A stretch of DNA of 64,000 nt, taken from Epiperipatus broadwayi (lineage: Eukaryota > Animalia > Onychophora). Positions 1-38,231 of this stretch are shown one piece after another (positions within the stretch are counted from its first letter, which is position 1; the number at the start of each line of letters is the position of its first letter). The notes below the pieces were generated by a model, which saw only the letters and a list, made by a program, of their open reading frames with translations, did no database searches and had not been told where the DNA came from. The position numbers and the translations under genes were made by a program. Where the stretch lies: positions 12,214,001 through 12,278,000 of the forward strand of contig JAQFVV010000005.1 in NCBI GenBank assembly GCA_028023455.1. The letters run 5' to 3'.

Positions 1-3000
1 TGGAGTATTTTAACATAGAATTTAAACCAATTTATTTCTCTGTTATATTGTTGTAAATGAAGACTAGCATTTGTTTATTCATAATGCCATTACAATATCA
101 AAAGTTTGATAAATGGAGGATAAAAAAATACTTTGAGAATATTAGAATTTAACAAATAGACATTGTTTGGATAACTGTTTATGATACTTTTAACTTGTTT
201 AGATTAAATTATAGCTCACAGAATAGACATTGGAACTGTTGTTTCTTTGAAAAGTGATGCAGGAGGACTGTGATCAGATTGCATGTTAACATATATTTTA
301 TTTATAATATTTTGTAAATATTATTCATTACTGTATTTTAAGTTTGTTAATTATTTGTTTTTATATATATGAAATAAAAAAAAGTTAAACTTAGTTTAGA
401 TTCGAATTTATATCCTAAATTTTAATGATTAAAACTTTGATTTGTTTATCTATTGACTGCTAATTACTTTCAGCTATACATGTTATAAATATTGAAAATC
501 TGAAAGGATTGTATTATAACAATTACTTGTTGATATTCTATTTGGAAAATAATGTGAATGGATAGACAAACTTATTATTATATTTTATTTTAATCAATTA
601 CTTTATTATGAATATTGTAGAATTATCATTAGCTTTCTTATATTTTAACATTTTTGTTGCACAGAAATTTTATATGTCATATATTAAACAGTGAATAGAT
701 TATTTTTTCTCTATAAGCACCTATTTTTATTAACATTAATTTAGATGAAGAATAGATTTCATGATATTTAATTAGAGTGGATGTCACAAATGTTTATTGT
801 CTATTTGTCGCTTCTTATATTTATTGTTAATAATTTTTTAATTCATTTAAAACAAATAAACTTGTTTTAGTGGTCATTTCAATTAATAATGCAAATCTAT
901 TGGCTAATAAAATTTTAATATATAGTAGTTAAAGTATAGATTTCCATTATATATTTTATAATTAATCATAAAATAGTCCAGGAATCAAATGATTGGATTG
1001 ATAAGTGTATGTATTATTATGTATCATTTTCTCTATTATAAATATAATATATTGTCTTTTGAGCTAAGTATACATATTATATGATAATAGATTAATTAAT
1101 TTGTTATAATTAGATGTTTAATAATTAATTAGAAGATCACCATAATTATTTTGACAGTTATAGTTATTTTGGATAAAAAATGTATATCTGAAGTAGTTCA
1201 GTAGTTTATAAAGTATAAGTATATTGGTTATTTATGGTAAGCAAGTCAGTGCATTCTTTTAAACTTATTTATTGAATGTATATTATAGTAACATATTATT
1301 TAGTTAGAAAGATAGTAATTTCATGATGTTATAAAATTAGTAATTGCGTACATTGAAACTGGTATTTGAATTACATTAAATAGAATGGTTTAGCATAGAT
1401 TTAAAGCTCATTAGGGTATATTATATATTTAATTTAGATATTAAGCTTTTAATGTTACCATTTTCCTATAATCAAGTACCACTAGTACTATGCATATTAG
1501 GATAATTATGATTTAGGGTTTAATAACTTAGCTTTATTGATTTGAAGAATAATTCATTGTGATTTGCTAATCATATTTATGTAAGTATCTAATAAAAGTC
1601 TTTTCTATATTTTATGTCATTATGATTTGGATATTGTAAATTGTCAGGCTATTTGAAGTATTGACTTTCATTTTATATCATTATAAAATGGCAAAAATGG
1701 GAAGGAATGATAGATAAGTTGTTTTTGCATATTGTGTTTTATTATAGTTTTAGTATTGTAAACATTTTATTCCATTATAATTTGATGTTGTAAATTTATG
1801 AGGTTTTAAAAGAATTTTTTTTATATATTTTATTAATGATAAGTTAATGTGGCATAAATCTGTAGAATGACAAAAGTCTTACCACCATTAAGTATTTTTA
1901 TCCTATTACAATTGGTTTACCCAACAAAGGCATATTAGTATTTATGAGATAGTGTTGCTCTGTTAACATTATTTTCATTTTATTCTGTTGCAATTGGCTC
2001 TCAAACTTGTGAATGAAATATTAGCTTCTTGTATTTTTATTCCCTTACAATTGGTGATTAACATTTGGGTTATACCTTAAGTCTGTTACAATTGCTGTCT
2101 CAAGTTCACAGGCTATATTGAAGTCCTTTTCTAATCTTATTATATTTTTATTTTGTTACAAATGCCACCCAAATCTGTGGGGTTATTAAATAAGAGCTTT
2201 TCACTATTTTTATTGTTATAATAGATATTGTATTGCAGTGCTTATTAAATCTCTATCCAGCATTTAATCTATGAGATTTATTAAAACTACAATCTGGCAT
2301 ATATTGATTACTAAATTTACATTATTTGGCACAAATATGATGATAAAAAAGAATTTGCTGCTTAACAGCATTGTGTAAGGAAGTGTAATATAATGTTTAA
2401 TTGGATTTATTCTAATCCTTCTATCTTTTATTTTTAAATTTTCAAACATCCCATACTTTTTTAAAGCTCTTGCATTTCAAGTTTTAGTTTTTTAGGGTTT
2501 TCACTGAATAATAATTGAGGAGGCTCTCAACATTTCCTTCTTTCAATAAGGAGGAGTCATATTCTAATAGTTTCAATTTTGAATATTCTTTCTTATTCTT
2601 CTGGGTTGAAAGCTCCAGAGTGGGTTCCTTAATCTGTTTCCATTCATCCACAGTAGTCTAGTTAGGCTAATGCTAGCAAGTATTAATTGTTGAGATTTTT
2701 CAACTCGACAGCATTGCCATTGCCATATGTTTATAAGCTAGCTGGAGACAAGACTGTAATTTACTAATGCAGCACTCACTACAATTCCAAAAGTGTAGGG
2801 TTCTTAGCCATTCATCATTAATATGGTTATCTGCTTTATTGCAAGAATACTTCTCAACGTTAATGCTTTTTGTAAAATGGCATGCATAATCTTACCCTTC
2901 TTCATCAGTAACATCTGAACATATATAACTTTTTAGAGCTAGTGTCACCAAAGGTAGTTCACTATGTTTAGTTAGTATGGGGGATATTGCCAGGAGTGCT

Positions 3001-19529: not shown

Positions 19530-19666
19530 ATATAAGAGTTTAAGACGATATTTTAATTTCAATTTTTAATTTTTAAAGAAAGTTTTTAAATGCGAACTTT
19601 TTATTTTAACTTGTTTAATAATATATATAAAAAAAAACAATGTAACGAACGTCTGTGCTCGTTACA
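19530..19666 (+). repeat. 137-bp direct repeat, left copy, ending in hairpin TGTAACGA-N10-TCGTTACA
   Basis: No difference found by eye against 22539-22675; the terminal hairpin resembles a Helitron 3' end. Confidence 0.95.
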
Positions 19667-22538
19667 TATCAGTAAAGTTACTTAAAAAAAAAATGATCAA
19701 AAAAAAAAAATATTTTACTTAGGGTTAGTAATTACGGTATTAACAAAATTTACAAACATTCAGTTACTAATTTTACAAAAAACTATATACAAAAAGAAAA
19801 AGAAAATGCTGACCATCGCCTACCTAAGGACCATTTACGTTAACACCCCTCCCCCCGAGAATTCTATTTTATTTTATCCATTTGATTTCTACTTACGGCA
19901 TGACAAACAAATTATTTAACTTATTTAGGAAGGTTGCATTGAGATAAATATGTTCCAAGATAATGGATTTATACGTGTATATTTGCAGCACAATTATAAC
20001 TACCACCAACTTATTTATGACTGATTGAAATGCATAAATAGGATTACACTGACGTAAATTCCCAACGGTACTCATCGTAAGGTACCACATTTCGATCATA
20101 AACTTCCGTGGCTGTGCGCCTATACACGTTAACGCATAAATATATGTTAACAAAAAAAAGACATATCCAATGCAACCTTTTGATTTTCTTTTTAATTTAC
20201 AAAAATTAGTTTTAAAATTATTTATACTTTCTTTTATTTAATATATATGCGCAATTTCTTGCTGGCAGTGCTTTTATAAAATTTAAAAATATCCGACTTA
20301 TGTAAGCAGATAAAACATTCATTTTGATAAAATTTGCTCAGGGTATTTGTGGTTTATTAAAGATCGGAAATTTCAGCATTAATTCCCCTTCTCAGGGTCA
20401 ATCTCTGAGGTAAGGCCACACTTGGGACGCCAATTATAACGATCCAAACGAAGTGGTAGATCGCATCGCACCGCACCGCACTACCAAAGGGCGCCATCTA
20501 GGCATTTGAGCCTAGAAAAATTTATAGAGTAGGCAGATACGCGCTGTTAGGATTCCACTTTATTTACATATTTAGATCGTTAGCCCATTGTCACTAGCTC
20601 AGTGGAATAGCAGAGATTTAATAATATCATTTACTAGTATATAAAAGAATAAAGTAAGCCACTGCCAGTAATTATCATACAAACAGATTTATTTATGCAC
20701 ATATATATAAGGTTTAAAATTATTTTAGTGATTTACATTTAAACATTTAACATTATTTTTAACTTTGATTTTACTTTAATTTACATTGAGTTACTATTAT
20801 ATTATAAATTTACATTTTTAATCAAGTTCGCACAGATGGGCTTATAAACCTGTTTAATATGTTGCTATAGATCGGTTACATAGATTTCAACGGTCAAAAA
20901 CATTTCAAAGTAAACATAAACGATCAAAATACAAAATTATTGATTACTGACAATTGCATAGGGAATTATAAGAAACCCTCTAGTATTCATCGTAAGATAC
21001 TTGCATCGTCACCAATAACTTAAAAGACATCCGAATAAATACATTTTTAGATACTCACCGTAAGGTATCATTATTTATCGAATGTCTATATATTTTGATC
21101 AAATATGAAACGCAAAACATAGTTAACCGATAAACAATCCATGCAAGCGTCTATAAACAACTTAAATTTAATAGTTTTATTTAGGATCGAGCCTGAATCG
21201 ACTACATAGATTTGCATTTAAAAATAAAATATTCTATCCCTACTTAACCTTAGGCAACACATTTCGCAATCAACTGGCGCCAATCCATCTGATACATTCA
21301 TGTATTCAATGTAGCATGATACGACAACACAACAATATTGTCAGGGATGTACATCTGAACAATATGTAGAAATAGAACCGACATTGACTCTCCACCCACA
21401 GGGATGTGACATCTGTGGGCAAGTAGATCAATAAACTAAAAACTCCATAGGAATGGGCTGCGGTATTCTGCCGACTTACAAACCCATCCATAGGCAAACA
21501 GAGGGTGTGTGGCGTATATCTATAATCCTGCCCGTAGCGGATCTCATATTACACCTACTAATTACATAAATATATCCAATCCATTGAACCAATTCAACTA
21601 CGAAATGAACAACCCAAGATTACCCTCCCTTAATATATCTTTACAAATCGATACAGCCATTCACGCCCGACTTAAGTTTAACATTTTTATAATTAATTTA
21701 ACGGAAACAACAATCATAATAAAACTTAAAGAACAAAAAATAAATAAATGGAAATGATTTTACAAAATAAATAAGAAAAAAAATACATCAAATAACATTA
21801 TTAATTTAGTTTGGTCAGATAGGAAACTAATGCAATTATTTTAAATACGAAAAGTTTTTAACTTAATGTTCATTAATTGTAAAGTTCTTACGGTTTTAAA
21901 CAGTTCATCTTTATCTGTCGTTTGTAAGTTTGAACGGGAATTCCCACGCCGTCCTGAAGATATTGGTATACATTTAGCCGATGTTTTATTTATTCATTCG
22001 GAGGTTTTTTAATTTGGTTGGTCCTCAATGTAGGAAACGATAGTTCATTTCTCCCTTCTTTAACAGCTGAAAGAATTGACCGTGCGTCTGTCAATTCCTC
22101 CAACTCCGGACTACTACATATAGTCACATCGTAATAATCAATTTCCAGTCACTCACTACCTATGCTTTCCAAAACTTGTCCTTTTTATATTTTTGTCAAA
22201 GGATTGAATTAACATTGCGTCATGGATGTAATGATCCTTTCGCTGAGGTCCGATTTCCCAAATGGATTTCTTTCATTGGCTAATCCGTTTCTATTGTTTT
22301 CTTTCTATCTGACTGAAGTTATTTCATTTAAATGCTCAAGGCTGGTTTACATTTAACTAATTAACAATCATTTCCATTTCTAATTAATTACCCTGTTTTC
22401 CAAATCAAAAATATATTTAAAGACAGATTTAGAGATATAATTTTATCTCCAAATCTTTTTAAAATTTAGTTTTAAAAATACCTTTTTCTTTAATAAAAAT
22501 TTTATTTTAATAATTTTTTATTATCTGTGCGACTTAAT
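19667..22538. other. CpG-retaining cassette with decayed ORFs between the direct repeats
   Basis: CpG far more frequent than in the flanks; GC-richer modules alternate with AT-rich spacers; disrupted ORFs on both strands. Confidence 0.5.
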
Positions 22539-22675
22539 ATATAAGAGTTTAAGACGATATTTTAATTTCAATTTTTAATTTTTAAAGAAAGTTTTTAAAT
22601 GCGAACTTTTTATTTTAACTTGTTTAATAATATATATAAAAAAAAACAATGTAACGAACGTCTGTGCTCGTTACA
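22539..22675 (+). repeat. 137-bp direct repeat, right copy
   Basis: Identical by eye to 19530-19666; followed by CTAT. Confidence 0.95.
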
Positions 22676-33699: not shown

Positions 33700-35880
33700 A
33701 GTCTGAGTTTTCCCATATTCTGCTCCATCCCATTTTCCACAACATAATCTTTGTCAACTCTATGGCCTTTATATCTAAATCATCCTTATCTTTTCCCAAA
33801 CCCAGCATGAAAAACAATAATCCACTTTCTGTATAATCACTTTTTTCATATTCATTCTTCTAACTTCATTATATGGGCCCTTTCTCTTTTCAAGTATTTA
33901 CATTCAACTAACAGATGTCTAATATTTTCTATTCCTTCCTTACATAATTTACAGCCTAAATTACCCATATTTTTCCACTTACATTAAACAATAAACTGAG
34001 AGAGTGCAAACCTTTCAAGCACTTAGCTAATCAGATCGCAAATACTGAGACAGAGAATTTAACAAAAAAAGAGTGGTTCCACTCTCTTCTTTACATGTCT
34101 TTCTATATATCCAAGCTAGTCCAATTTCAATACTGTCTGCGCTTCGTAAAATAAATATTTACATATATTGCTGCAAGTTATAACATCGAAAAACTACTGT
34201 GTAGTAAATCGAAAGATTTCATCTGTAGGTTTATAATTAGAACTCGGTGAGTTGAGTGTGAAGATATTTAAGATTCACACTTTCAGATCTAAGTACTTTG
34301 GACTGGCTTGGATATATAGAAAGACAAGTGAAGAAGAGAGTGGAACCACTCTTTTCTTGTTAAATTCTCTGTCTCAGTACTTGCGATCTGATTGGCTAAG
34401 CACTCTCTCAGTTTAATTTCAATACCATCTGCGCTTTGTAAAATAAATATTATTTACATATATTGCTGCAAGTTATAACATCAAAAAACTACTGCATAGT
34501 AAATTAAAAGATTTCATGCTGTATTTTTATAATTAGAACTCGGTGAGTTGAGTGTGAAAATATTCAAGATTCACGCTTTCAGATCTAAGTACTTTGGACT
34601 GGCTTGGATATGTATAGAAAGACAAGTAAAGAAGAGAGTGAAACCACTCTTTTCTTGGTAAATTCTCTGTCTGAGTATTTGCAATCTGATTGGCTAAGTG
34701 CTTGAGAGGTTTTCACTCTCTCAGTTTAATTTCAATACCGTCTGTGCTTTGTAAAATAAATATTATTTACATATATTGCTGCAAGTTATAACATCGAAAA
34801 ACTACTGCATAGTAAATCGAAAGATTTCACACTGTATGTTTATAATTAGACCTCAGTGAGTTGAGTGTGAAGATATTTAAGATTCATGCTTTCAGATCTA
34901 AGTACTTTGGACTGGCTTGGATATGTATAGAAAGACAAGTAAAGAAGAGAGTGGAACCACTCTTTTCTGTTAAATTCTCTGTCTGAGTATTTGCGATCTG
35001 ATTGGCTAAGCGCTTGAGAGGTTTGCACTCTCAGTTTAATTTCAATATGGTCTGTGCTTTGTAAAATAAATATTATTTACATATATTGCTGCAAGTTATA
35101 ACATCGAAAAACTACTGCGTAGTAAATCGAAAGATTTCACGCTGTATGTTTATAATTAGAACTTAGTGAGTTGAGTATGAAGATATTTAAGATTCACGCT
35201 TTCAGATCTAAGTACTTTGGACTGGCTTGGATATATAGAAAGACAAGTAAAGAAGAGAGTGGAACCACTCTTTTCTTGTTAAATTCTCTGTCTCAGTATT
35301 TGCGATCTGATTGGCTAAGCGCTTGAGTAGTTTGCACTCTCTCAGTTTAATTTCAATATCGTCTGCGCTTTGTAAAATAAATATTATTAAACAATAAACT
35401 ACTTTCCTTACTATTATCATATATTAACTTGCACCTAATATTCTGTTTATTTCTATTTATATATATATTTAAACACTTTTTACTCTCCATACTAGTTCTC
35501 CATTTCTCCAACTCCCTATTCTTTATTAATAAATCCTATTCTTTTATCCCATTCCTTACCACTATAACACTCAACAATCCTCCTAATACAATCATCCCAT
35601 CTTTTGTACAAATATACTGATATAAATTCTTTATCCAAATCTTTTGCATACTGCATTACCTTTCTCACCCATCTTGTTACTCATAACCCAATTAAATATT
35701 ATTTTGGCTATTTTATTATCGATAAACTGTAATCTACCAAACATTTTTTTTTTCATGTGTCATAGCATCGGCTGGGAAGCAAATCCCATCTTGTTACCAG
35801 TCCTTTACTCATAACCCAATTAAATATTATTTTGGCTATTCTTTTATTATCGATAAACTGTAATCTACCAAACATTTTTT
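33700..35880 (-). mobile_element. Old LINE 3' region (RT C-terminus and CCHC finger) interrupted by the tandem-array insertion and a SINE
   Basis: RWVRKVMQYAKDL, KWRTSMESKKCLNIY, YDNSKESSLLFNVSG (continuous once the array and one TSD copy are removed), then after a frameshift CKLCKEGIENIRHLLVEC (C-x2-C-x8-H-x4-C). Confidence 0.75.
33998..35385 (+). mobile_element. Retrotransposed tandem array of a ~312-nt unit with 5' inversion
   Basis: Units start at 34125, 34417, 34730, 35040 and 35351 (partial); inverted partial unit at 33998-34124; 15-bp TSD ATTAAACAATAAACT at 33983-33997 and 35386-35400. Confidence 0.9.
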
Positions 35881-35915
35881 TTCATGCGTCATAGCATCGG
35901 CTGGGAAGCAAATCC
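35667..35915. repeat. Local ~130-bp tandem duplication including the SINE 3' half
   Basis: CCCATCTTGTTAC...TCATAACCCAATTAAATATT...CATAGCATCGGCTGGGAAGCAAATCC present twice. Confidence 0.85.
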
Positions 35916-36401: not shown

Positions 36402-38231
36402 ATGGCTTCTTTCACTGAAAAATTTAATTATGATTCTGATATGGGCAACGGTTTTCCTATTGAAGATGTCTGCATGTCTGAGGCTTCATGTTTTTCTTAT
36501 TCTGCGAATTCCAGTGACACATCAGATGATTATTTGGATGATCGAGAAGCTGTGGTTTCAAAGAAAAGAAAAAAGATGCAGTGAAGTCATCTGTAAGGGT
36601 GCTGAGGAAGGCGACTGAGCTGACGCCGGGTCTTCATCTCGACCTGATTCAGATTCGTTTCTTGGTAATAAATCATGTGTAGCAATCGGAACATTTACTA
36701 AGTTTCCAGGACTAAATTTGCCCATTACCCATGAGTACTCATTTCTTTTATTTATGTTTTGATAGGAAATTGTTTGACCCCATTTGTACTGAAAGCAATA
36801 GATATGCTTCAGAGTGGAAGGCATTACCAAAGTGGGTCTATCTGTCACCCACTGAGTTGAATGCATTTTTTGGCATGGTAATTCATATTTGTAGTGTAAC
36901 ACGCATGACAAAACTCCAATATATTTGGTCTAAAGATGAATTTTTACATCAACCGGTATTTGTTAAAGTTATGACCCGAGATCGATTTTTTGGAATTCTA
37001 ATTAATTTGCATTTCAATAATAATAAAACCATGCTACCTAATTACTAGTAAAGAGCATGATAGGATTTATAAAATAAGGCCAATTATAGATCATTGTAAT
37101 ATTAACTTCAAGGCTGCATACTAGATGCATCAAGAAGTAGCAGTTGAAGCAATTACGAAATTCAAGGGTCGTAACACGATGAAACAGTGTGATTCCTCAA
37201 AACTGGTAAAGCAAGGTTTCAAATGGTGGGTCTGTGCAGATAGCCATAATGGATATGTGTACCACATGGAGTTGTATACAGGCAAAGATACAACTGAAGA
37301 TGCTGGCCTAAATCTGGGAACCTGAGCAGTGCTTTTGCCATATCTAGCTAAACAGAATCATATTGTTTTTTTGTGAGATATTTTACTAGTGTGCAATTAG
37401 CAGAAAAGCTGTCTGCAAGTAAAATCACTTGTTGTGGCACACTGAAAGCTGATAGGAAGGGTATTCCAGTTAGCATCCGTGAGAAAGCCAAAAATTTTAA
37501 AAGATATGCAGAGAGGAGACTTCTGTTCTGTATATGACAGTGGTCTTGAGTTTCTAGTATGGATGGATAAGAAGCCAATTATTATGCTCAATAATGCTTA
37601 TCCACCATCTGGAAGTGGTACTGCTATTAGAAAACACAAGGATGTACATGTCATACATATCCATGTCCAAATGCTATCAAAAAATACAACTACTTCATGG
37701 ATGGGGTTAGATTTAGCAAACCAGAAGCGAACTGCATACGTCTGGGATAGGAAGTCTAAGCATTGGCCTATGCATTTATTCTGGCATTGTTTTGATACAG
37801 CCATCAATAATTCCTACATTATATACAGACTTTACATGGCCCAAAAGAAAATGTGGCCTAAATCACACTTGGAATATAGAGTAGCTTTATCAGCCAGCCT
37901 TATGGGTGACTTCACAACCAGAAAAATGAAGCCTTCAGTCATACATCTGCATGCCATAAAATTGCTGATCTGTGCATTCGTAACAAGCCCATCAAAAAGG
38001 TGCAATGTATGCCTCAAAAACAAAGCACGACATGCATCTTACTTTAGCTGCGTAGAATGTGAATGTATCCCCCTGTGTAGGTGTGAAGAGAGAGGCTGCT
38101 TTGCTGCTTACCATGCCAGAAGCAGCACTACACAGCTACAACAGAAGCAGCACTACACAGCTACAACACCTATGGCACACATACAGGCTCAGAATCATAT
38201 CAATGCTGGTTTTCGAATAGGTAAGACATAA
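36402..38231 (+). pseudogene. piggyBac (DDE_Tnp_1_7 / PGBD-like) transposase pseudogene
   Basis: Acidic N-terminus, ELNAFFGM, MTRDRFFGIL..LHF, AITKFKGR, GFKWWVCADS..GYVY..ELYTGK, decayed catalytic motifs (AVE, DIFTS, MDGLDLANQ), C-terminal Cys-rich domain CNVC...CVEC...C...CFAAYH; several stops and frameshifts. Confidence 0.93.

Follow-up and report, generated by a model that had tools for sequence, protein, structure and literature searches.

A multimeric ~310-nt non-coding retroelement in an onychophoran genome, probably inserted in trans by a Penelope-like element

The stretch of DNA analysed here, referred to as the window, comprises 64,000 nt of the genome of the onychophoran Epiperipatus broadwayi (assembly GCA_028023455.1, contig JAQFVV010000005.1, positions 12,214,001–12,278,000) and carries, inside a dead long interspersed nuclear element (LINE), an insertion of ~1.4 kb built from tandem copies of a short unit. 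This insertion (33992–35388) begins with an inverted piece of 133 nt, continues with 37 nt of a partial unit and then with four units of ~310 nt, and has a direct repeat on both sides (Table 1). The parts were delimited by BLAST against a concatemer of the unit, and all unit coordinates given below are based on the third unit (34768–35077, 310 nt, ending in ...AAATAAATATTATT). A period of ~313 nt, determined with Tandem Repeats Finder, and the parts found by BLAST agree with an earlier reading made from the letters alone (hereafter the sequence-only reading), which had described a ~312-nt multimer with an inverted partial piece. The unit, 310–313 nt long and with a GC content of 33%, is non-coding, having stops in all frames and no open reading frame (ORF) beyond a few codons. 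A 39-nt segment, which we call the tail, is present at the right end of the insertion only, and the 3′ end lacks poly(A), as had been stated, as well as any simple-repeat tail. We also found, in keeping with the same reading, that TAAACT, the complement of AGTTTA in the unit, forms both the last six bases of the left repeat and the first 6 nt of the inverted arm, and that the start of the forward arm lies at the neighbouring position of the unit.

The direct repeat bounding the insertion is an exact 15-nt sequence, ATTAAACAATAAACT, found at 33983–33997 and 35386–35400 with no third occurrence in the window. In six paralogous copies of the host LINE (L068–L073) TTAAACAATAAACT is present once each, preceded by C and followed by the right flank of the window (with a small variant in L070), and the duplication therefore arose with the insertion. 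Because C precedes TTAAACAATAAACT in the paralogues, the target-derived part of the repeat is 13–14 nt and the 15th base is a chance match; thus, of the exact 15-bp target site duplication (TSD) claimed earlier, the 15-nt repeat itself stands but the true TSD is shorter. The claim that the empty site is confirmed by a LINE motif restored upon removal of the array plus one repeat did not hold, as the sequence of the LINE family is not regained in this way. In five of the six paralogues 35–36 nt separate ...CTTACAT from TTAAACAATAAACT, in the window that stretch is missing precisely at the outer border of the left TSD copy (33983/33984), and YDNSKESSLLFNVSG spans the deletion. An independent deletion of 31 nt was seen in the same stretch of L070. 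The stretch may be prone to deletion, or the loss in the window may be linked to the insertion.

The unit was then followed through the 5.6-Gb genome with a two-unit query, which returned more than 4,234 first-look candidates and hence thousands of copies, and 40 distinct loci, including the window, were mapped against the unit concatemer. A TSD score of at least 10 was obtained at 29 of these 40 loci, as compared with 20 of 310 mismatched pairs of left and right flanks (6%; Fisher p about 1e-20), more than chance would give. The TSDs of the family are AT-rich and about 10–19 nt long, including overlaps with the element ends. Thirty loci, the window among them, are two-armed, with the arms placed head to head and the sense 3′ ends facing outward. 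In 28 of these 30, one arm ends at unit 271–282 (...CUCUCAGUUUAAUUUCAAUA) and the other ends 30–40 nt further, between unit 302 and about position 14 of the next unit (...AAAUAAAUAUUAUU...), a one-of-each pairing for which independent choice of ends gives p = 4e-7 (binomial). The ten single-armed copies carry the tail end in four cases and the tail-less end in six. Arm spans range from 0.09 to 4.08 units (median 1.95), and the inner junctions between arms are variable, consistent with 5′ truncation. At both start sites the element frequently shows microhomology to the TSD edge. On the tail-less side the window has 6 nt of it, L029 has 9 nt, and L009 and L054 each have 8 nt with a single mismatch.

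Two loci depart from the one-of-each arrangement. In L061 (2519–2627) tail-type ends are found on both sides, the left arm being 74% identical and perhaps an older, separate insertion, and in L018 (983–1502), which has a clean 10-nt TSD, one arm ends at unit 109. A further possibility, that the two arms arose by snap-back or from a hairpin, was rejected, as symmetric inner junctions were no commoner than expected at random (by hand count, 8 of 28 lay within 40 nt, against 26% expected).

Variable TSD length, variable 5′ truncation and the presence of single-armed copies indicate target-primed reverse transcription rather than a DNA transposon. Together with the outward 3′ ends and the microhomology at both junctions, these features support the view that a multimeric ~310-nt unit was inserted by an RNA-mediated, target-primed route with both nicked target strands serving as primers, and to this extent the sequence-only reading was correct. 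As to the enzyme, insertions of Penelope-like elements (PLEs) are distinguished by partial tandems, often by an adjacent inverted 5′-truncated copy, and by a tail of 30–40 bp often at one end only, hallmarks that are stated not to occur in target-primed reverse transcription by LINEs (Craig et al. 2021, PMC8557442). With purified PLE protein, both strands of AT-rich target DNA are cut and then extended, reverse transcription begins within the RNA at two neighbouring sites whose interval is the tail, and templates with a dead hammerhead are still inserted in vitro (Frangieh et al. 2024, PMC11167929). Since every published structural feature of the PLE footprint is found in the 310-nt family, we consider the insertion in the window to be probably an old copy of a high-copy, non-coding, non-autonomous tandem retroelement family, inserted in trans by the reverse transcriptase-endonuclease of a PLE.

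PLEs are plentiful in this genome, with more than 10,243 GIY-YIG candidates, many of them in close inverted or tandem pairs. Two bounded PLE insertions (L064/L065 and L066) are both tandem and head-to-head with TSDs of 10–11 nt, and their outer ends differ, lying at about 847/986 and 988/928 in PLE coordinates (60–140 nt apart). The footprint of genuine PLEs in this genome is therefore the same as that of the 310-nt family. In the first of these insertions, L064 (G000:C12394:20940500-20950499) together with L065, the PLE forms a young array whose tandem copies of 3,135 bp are 98–100% identical; ORFs of 875 and 877 aa are still intact, one copy is inverted and 5′-truncated, and the TSD measures 10 nt. 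The ORF shows recognisable YVDD and GIY..YIG motifs, yet Pfam hmmscan names no family even at E <= 1, probably owing to the composition-bias filter acting on a very K/N/I-rich protein. A 3-kb cassette in the window (19530–22675) was compared with the L064 family as a possible copy of it, with a negative result.

The designation of the element as retrozyme-like was examined at the level of the RNA. Rfam gave no hammerhead, HDV-like, twister, pistol, hatchet or hairpin ribozyme in the window copy (E <= 10) or in 15 other copies (E <= 5), and only chance miRNA-like matches at permissive thresholds. A search for the hammerhead core (N-UGA-N-N-A with any Watson-Crick 3-8 pair, A3-U8 and U3-A8 included, followed by a helix II hairpin and GAAA) yielded no match in 65 units on both strands, bare cores being sporadic. 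Strictly speaking, a family in which neither a hammerhead nor any other known ribozyme is found does not qualify as a retrozyme, and what remains of the designation is the architecture of tandem units with TSDs. The 3′ ends define the sense strand, and its predicted fold is more stable than that of the antisense strand or of shuffled sequences (z of -1.9 when linear and, in eight copies folded as circles, between -2.0 and -4.6).

Comparison of units bears on the template. Divergence outside CpG is 2.8% between units of one insertion vs. 5.3% across insertions, and because units within an insertion are more alike, each insertion derives from a fairly homogeneous template, which fits either a young source array or the rolling copy of one unit. 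CpG decay is pronounced, with 27% of CpG positions changed as compared with 2.9% of others, and conservation along the unit is otherwise flat. The variants GATATGTATAG and GTCTGAGT, correctly reported as common to units 2 and 3 of the window, were found as a pair in none of 61 full-length units sampled at other loci. As they are private to this locus, the simplest reading is local duplication or conversion after insertion, as the sequence-only reading had cautioned would be needed for a pure rolling copy of a single circle. In addition, the 5′ ends of arms cluster at unit 271–277 (8 of 68 arms vs. 1.5 expected; Poisson p = 2e-4), in the same place as the tail-less 3′ ends, and four tail-less arms (L011, L012, L014 and L018) consist of exact whole numbers of units.

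Other ways of arriving at such copies have to be weighed against insertion by a PLE enzyme. Head-to-head arms of tandem subrepeats superficially resemble foldback elements, and a DNA-level origin could be imagined, whether as a foldback or cut-and-paste transposon with subrepeat arms or as a satellite spreading via extrachromosomal circles. Keeping in mind that the TSDs range in length between about 10 and 19 nt, that the termini are not identical but differ by the tail, that the arms are unequal with variable inner junctions, that one quarter of the copies are single-armed and 5′-truncated, and that terminal inverted repeats other than the units are lacking, we find this scarcely credible. 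A LINE, for instance an RTE-like one, might instead have mobilised a multimeric or circular ~312-nt RNA, the inverted arm being formed by classical twin priming at a chance microhomology, as had been proposed for this locus. Taken alone, the window is what this model predicts, since its inverted arm ends and its forward arm starts at unit 271 with 6 nt of microhomology at the inversion junction; moreover, variable TSDs and 5′ truncation also fit LINEs, and the tail arms of L001, L015, L061 and the single-armed L063 start at 271–273. Across the family, however, adjacency of the arms in unit coordinates is rare, being found in about four of 33 tail arms, the window included. Irrespective of the target, the second arm starts at the fixed site 271–282 in 28 of the 30 two-armed copies, and the site 30–40 nt downstream is then used by the other arm. 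Because so many loci use unit 271–282, the left end at AGTTTA in the window is a fixed start site of the family and not a one-off microhomology. Neither poly(A) nor a simple-repeat tail is present, and the unit has no similarity to LINEs or other sequence in the 64-kb window, LINE 3′ ends not having been searched genome-wide. These observations, and the tail signature specific to PLEs (PMC8557442, PMC11167929), speak against both a one-off, microhomology-chosen twin priming and mobilisation by LINEs, and we hold this explanation to be distinctly unlikely.

A retrozyme-type cycle would accept the PLE enzyme but supply it with a different template, in that the transcript would be cut near unit 271–277 by an unrecognised motif, circularised and copied in rolling-circle fashion. 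Such a cycle could account for the pile-up of arm 5′ ends at the site of the tail-less 3′ ends, for the tail-less arms of whole unit number, for the greater likeness of units within an insertion and for the predicted structure of the sense RNA, and a 5′-truncating family may well need some way to regenerate multimers. On the other hand, neither the Rfam nor the hammerhead core search gave a ribozyme, the pile-up could equally be due to collision with the second primer or to a stop of the reverse transcriptase at the adjacent hairpin as to a defined RNA end, and transcripts that read through tandem copies are the presumed templates of PLEs (PMC11167929). On balance, we regard the cycle as unlikely. 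Still less likely, in our estimation very doubtful, is its strictest version, in which a sharply defined RNA end exists at unit ~271–277 beside the hairpin GAGAG-GUUUGCA-CUCUC without a known ribozyme. If true, this would mean that the RNA is processed at a motif of a new kind, self-cleaving or guided by protein, which produces unit-length, possibly circular templates for rolling-circle copying by the PLE enzyme; the element would then amount to a 'retrozyme' that is ribozyme-less or has a new ribozyme.

Four small public runs under two organism labels contain the family in their contigs, although their status as RNA is a guess and the depth could be that of low-coverage DNA; since two labels are involved, a related species shares the family. 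When positions 34723–35122 of the window were compared with the runs, the summed contig depth on X5 and X8 was 20–50-fold lower over unit ~278–305 (the tail) than over unit 26–180. This dip over the AT-rich tail occurs on X5 and X8 only, not on X6 and X7, and could be caused by AT bias, library type or RNA processing. The loose-end sequence after CAGTTTAAT in 6 contigs had no genomic match at <=2 mismatches and was set aside as a mixture of different flanks.

Cumulatively, our findings suggest the following course of insertion by a PLE enzyme. A multimeric sense RNA would be bound by the enzyme, which would nick both strands of an AT-rich target about 10–17 bp apart, and each 3′-OH would prime reverse transcription at one of two fixed internal sites of the RNA. 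Site 1 would be AGUUUAAUUUCAAUA at unit 271–282, just 3′ of a small hairpin, and site 2 would be ...AAAUAAAUAUUAUU, 30–40 nt downstream (unit 302 to ~14 of the next unit), priming being presumably aided by 2–9 nt of microhomology. The two cDNAs would run towards the RNA 5′ end, stop variably and join head to head, a step that the variable inner junctions of head-to-head arms show in part. In the window, the strand ending ...TAAACT would have primed at site 1 to give the 133-nt inverted arm and the other strand at site 2 to give 4.1 units, with CpG decay and the local duplication or conversion of units 2 and 3 following later. The insertion with its TSD, the two start sites used one of each, the matching footprint of PLEs in this genome and the lack of known ribozymes are observed, whereas the identity of the enzyme and the form of the template, linear or circular, are parts of this scheme that we infer.

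Several points weigh against the assignment to PLEs. An autonomous PLE similar to the unit was not found among 24 PLE loci (blastn and nhmmer; best E = 4.8), a sample that included 20 GIY-YIG loci and three long PLE loci out of more than 10,000 GIY-YIG candidates. A hammerhead is absent, though canonical PLEs with a C-terminal endonuclease and animal retrozymes usually carry one. Microhomology at the start sites is frequent here, unlike in the anole PLE in vitro, whose start sites are not homologous to the target (PMC11167929). The runs containing the family may hold low-coverage DNA, as mentioned above, and a LINE that uses two preferred start sites may be entertained as a formal possibility. 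A 16-nt match of unit 295–310 in L032 and L038 was rejected as a link to a partner element, being of low complexity and lying within conserved coding sequence.

The coordinates of the features are collected in Table 1. The element that hosts the insertion belongs to a family of thousands of copies, its flanks giving 2,371 and 3,060 first-look candidates, and a C-x2-C...H-x4-C knuckle is visible in the translation of the left flank. No Pfam match was found in the ORFs of the host flanks, and the element is called a LINE because of its copy number and this CCHC knuckle. Further to the right, a direct duplication of ~110 nt (35677–35786 and 35805–35915, 95% identity) was noted in the LINE sequence, close to the point at which the alignments with paralogues end (~35680). 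It is followed by two ORF fragments (36731–38231, plus strand) that match the piggyBac-type DDE_Tnp_1_7 (PF13843, E = 5.5e-18 and 4.5e-6) and represent a decayed DNA transposon adjoining the LINE. Elsewhere, the family copy in L009 has tRNA-like matches on both sides (778–850, minus strand, and 2374–2445, plus strand; 37.5 and 26.4 bits), which may be tRNA-derived short interspersed nuclear elements (SINEs).

Table 1. Parts of the multimeric insertion and of its host element, in window coordinates
Feature	Position	Strand	Evidence or remark
Host: decayed LINE ORF2 C-terminal region, left flank	33700–33983	-	91–95% identity to thousands of paralogues
TSD, left copy, TTAAACAATAAACT	33984–33997	+	Once per copy in six paralogous LINEs; 15-nt repeat of the sequence-only reading begins at 33983
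Inverted tail-less arm, unit 271 down to 140	33992–34124	-	BLAST, 91% identity; inverted repeats I1–I3
Start of forward (tail) arm, partial unit 271–307	34123–34159	+	BLAST vs. unit
Unit 1, 295 nt; ~15-nt deletion in hairpin region just before AGTTTAA	34160–34454	+	
Unit 2, private variants GATATGTATAG and GTCTGAGT	34455–34767	+	
Unit 3, reference unit, 310 nt; private variants GATATGTATAG and GTCTGAGT as in unit 2	34768–35077	+	
Unit 4, tail-type 3′ end ...AAATATTATT	35078–35388	+	
Tail, 39 nt from start site 1 (after AGTTTA) to start site 2 (...ATATTATT)	35350–35388	+	Two 3′-end families in 40 loci
TSD, right copy; first 2–3 nt overlap element end (microhomology)	35387–35400	+	
Host LINE, right flank	35401–35680	-	92–96% identity to paralogues, from second base of right TSD copy

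If the family is indeed inserted by a PLE enzyme, its thousands of copies would constitute a large natural data set on the least understood step of PLE insertion, in which both nicked strands are extended from two fixed sites. The one-of-each pairing of ends is a rule that can be seen in published diagrams, where it comes without a mechanistic explanation. The family also shows that a non-coding RNA without a hammerhead can reach thousands of copies with a PLE-type footprint in an animal genome, and such amplification fits the insertion observed in vitro without hammerhead cleavage. In annotation, it should be kept in mind that an array of this kind can pass for a satellite, a foldback element or a product of LINE twin priming.

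Among known systems, foldback and DDE transposons differ from the family in that its TSD length varies and its termini are distinguished by the tail, and LINE-dependent, SINE-like elements differ in that the family has neither a tail repeat nor similarity to the rest of the window, the range within which LINE 3′ ends were compared. L1-type twin priming, as Ostertag and Kazazian reportedly described it in 2001, is closer, since there too both nicked strands prime on the RNA to give a 5′ inverted segment, TSDs and microhomology, and the arms in the window abut in RNA coordinates. It differs from the family, whose second site is fixed and always paired with the other, and which has no poly(A) and no LINE homology. 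With the metazoan non-LTR (non-long terminal repeat) retrozymes, for which mobilisation by PLEs has been proposed (Cervera & de la Pena 2020, PMC7229834; Li et al. 2026, bioRxiv 10.64898/2026.07.22.740005), the family shares tandem units of 150–450 bp, low GC content and TSDs of >4 bp (here 310–313 nt, 33% and, in the window, 13–14 nt), thousands of dispersed copies and co-existence with PLEs in the genome. It differs from them in having no type I hammerhead, with either the canonical or a swapped 3-8 core, on either strand. From PLEs themselves the family is set apart by the lack of an ORF, and so of a PLE reverse transcriptase or GIY-YIG endonuclease of its own, by the lack of similarity to the 24 sampled PLE loci, and by the frequent microhomology at both start sites. 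In its structure, however, it resembles them in the head-to-tail multimers, the head-to-head inverted 5′-truncated copy, the tail of 30–40 nt at one end and the two adjacent start sites, as well as in the AT-rich targets and variable TSDs, while the hammerhead that it lacks is dispensable for PLE insertion in vitro. Non-autonomous, hammerhead-less, multicopy head-to-tail derivatives have likewise been described for the PLEs of Chlamys (PMC8557442; PMC11167929).

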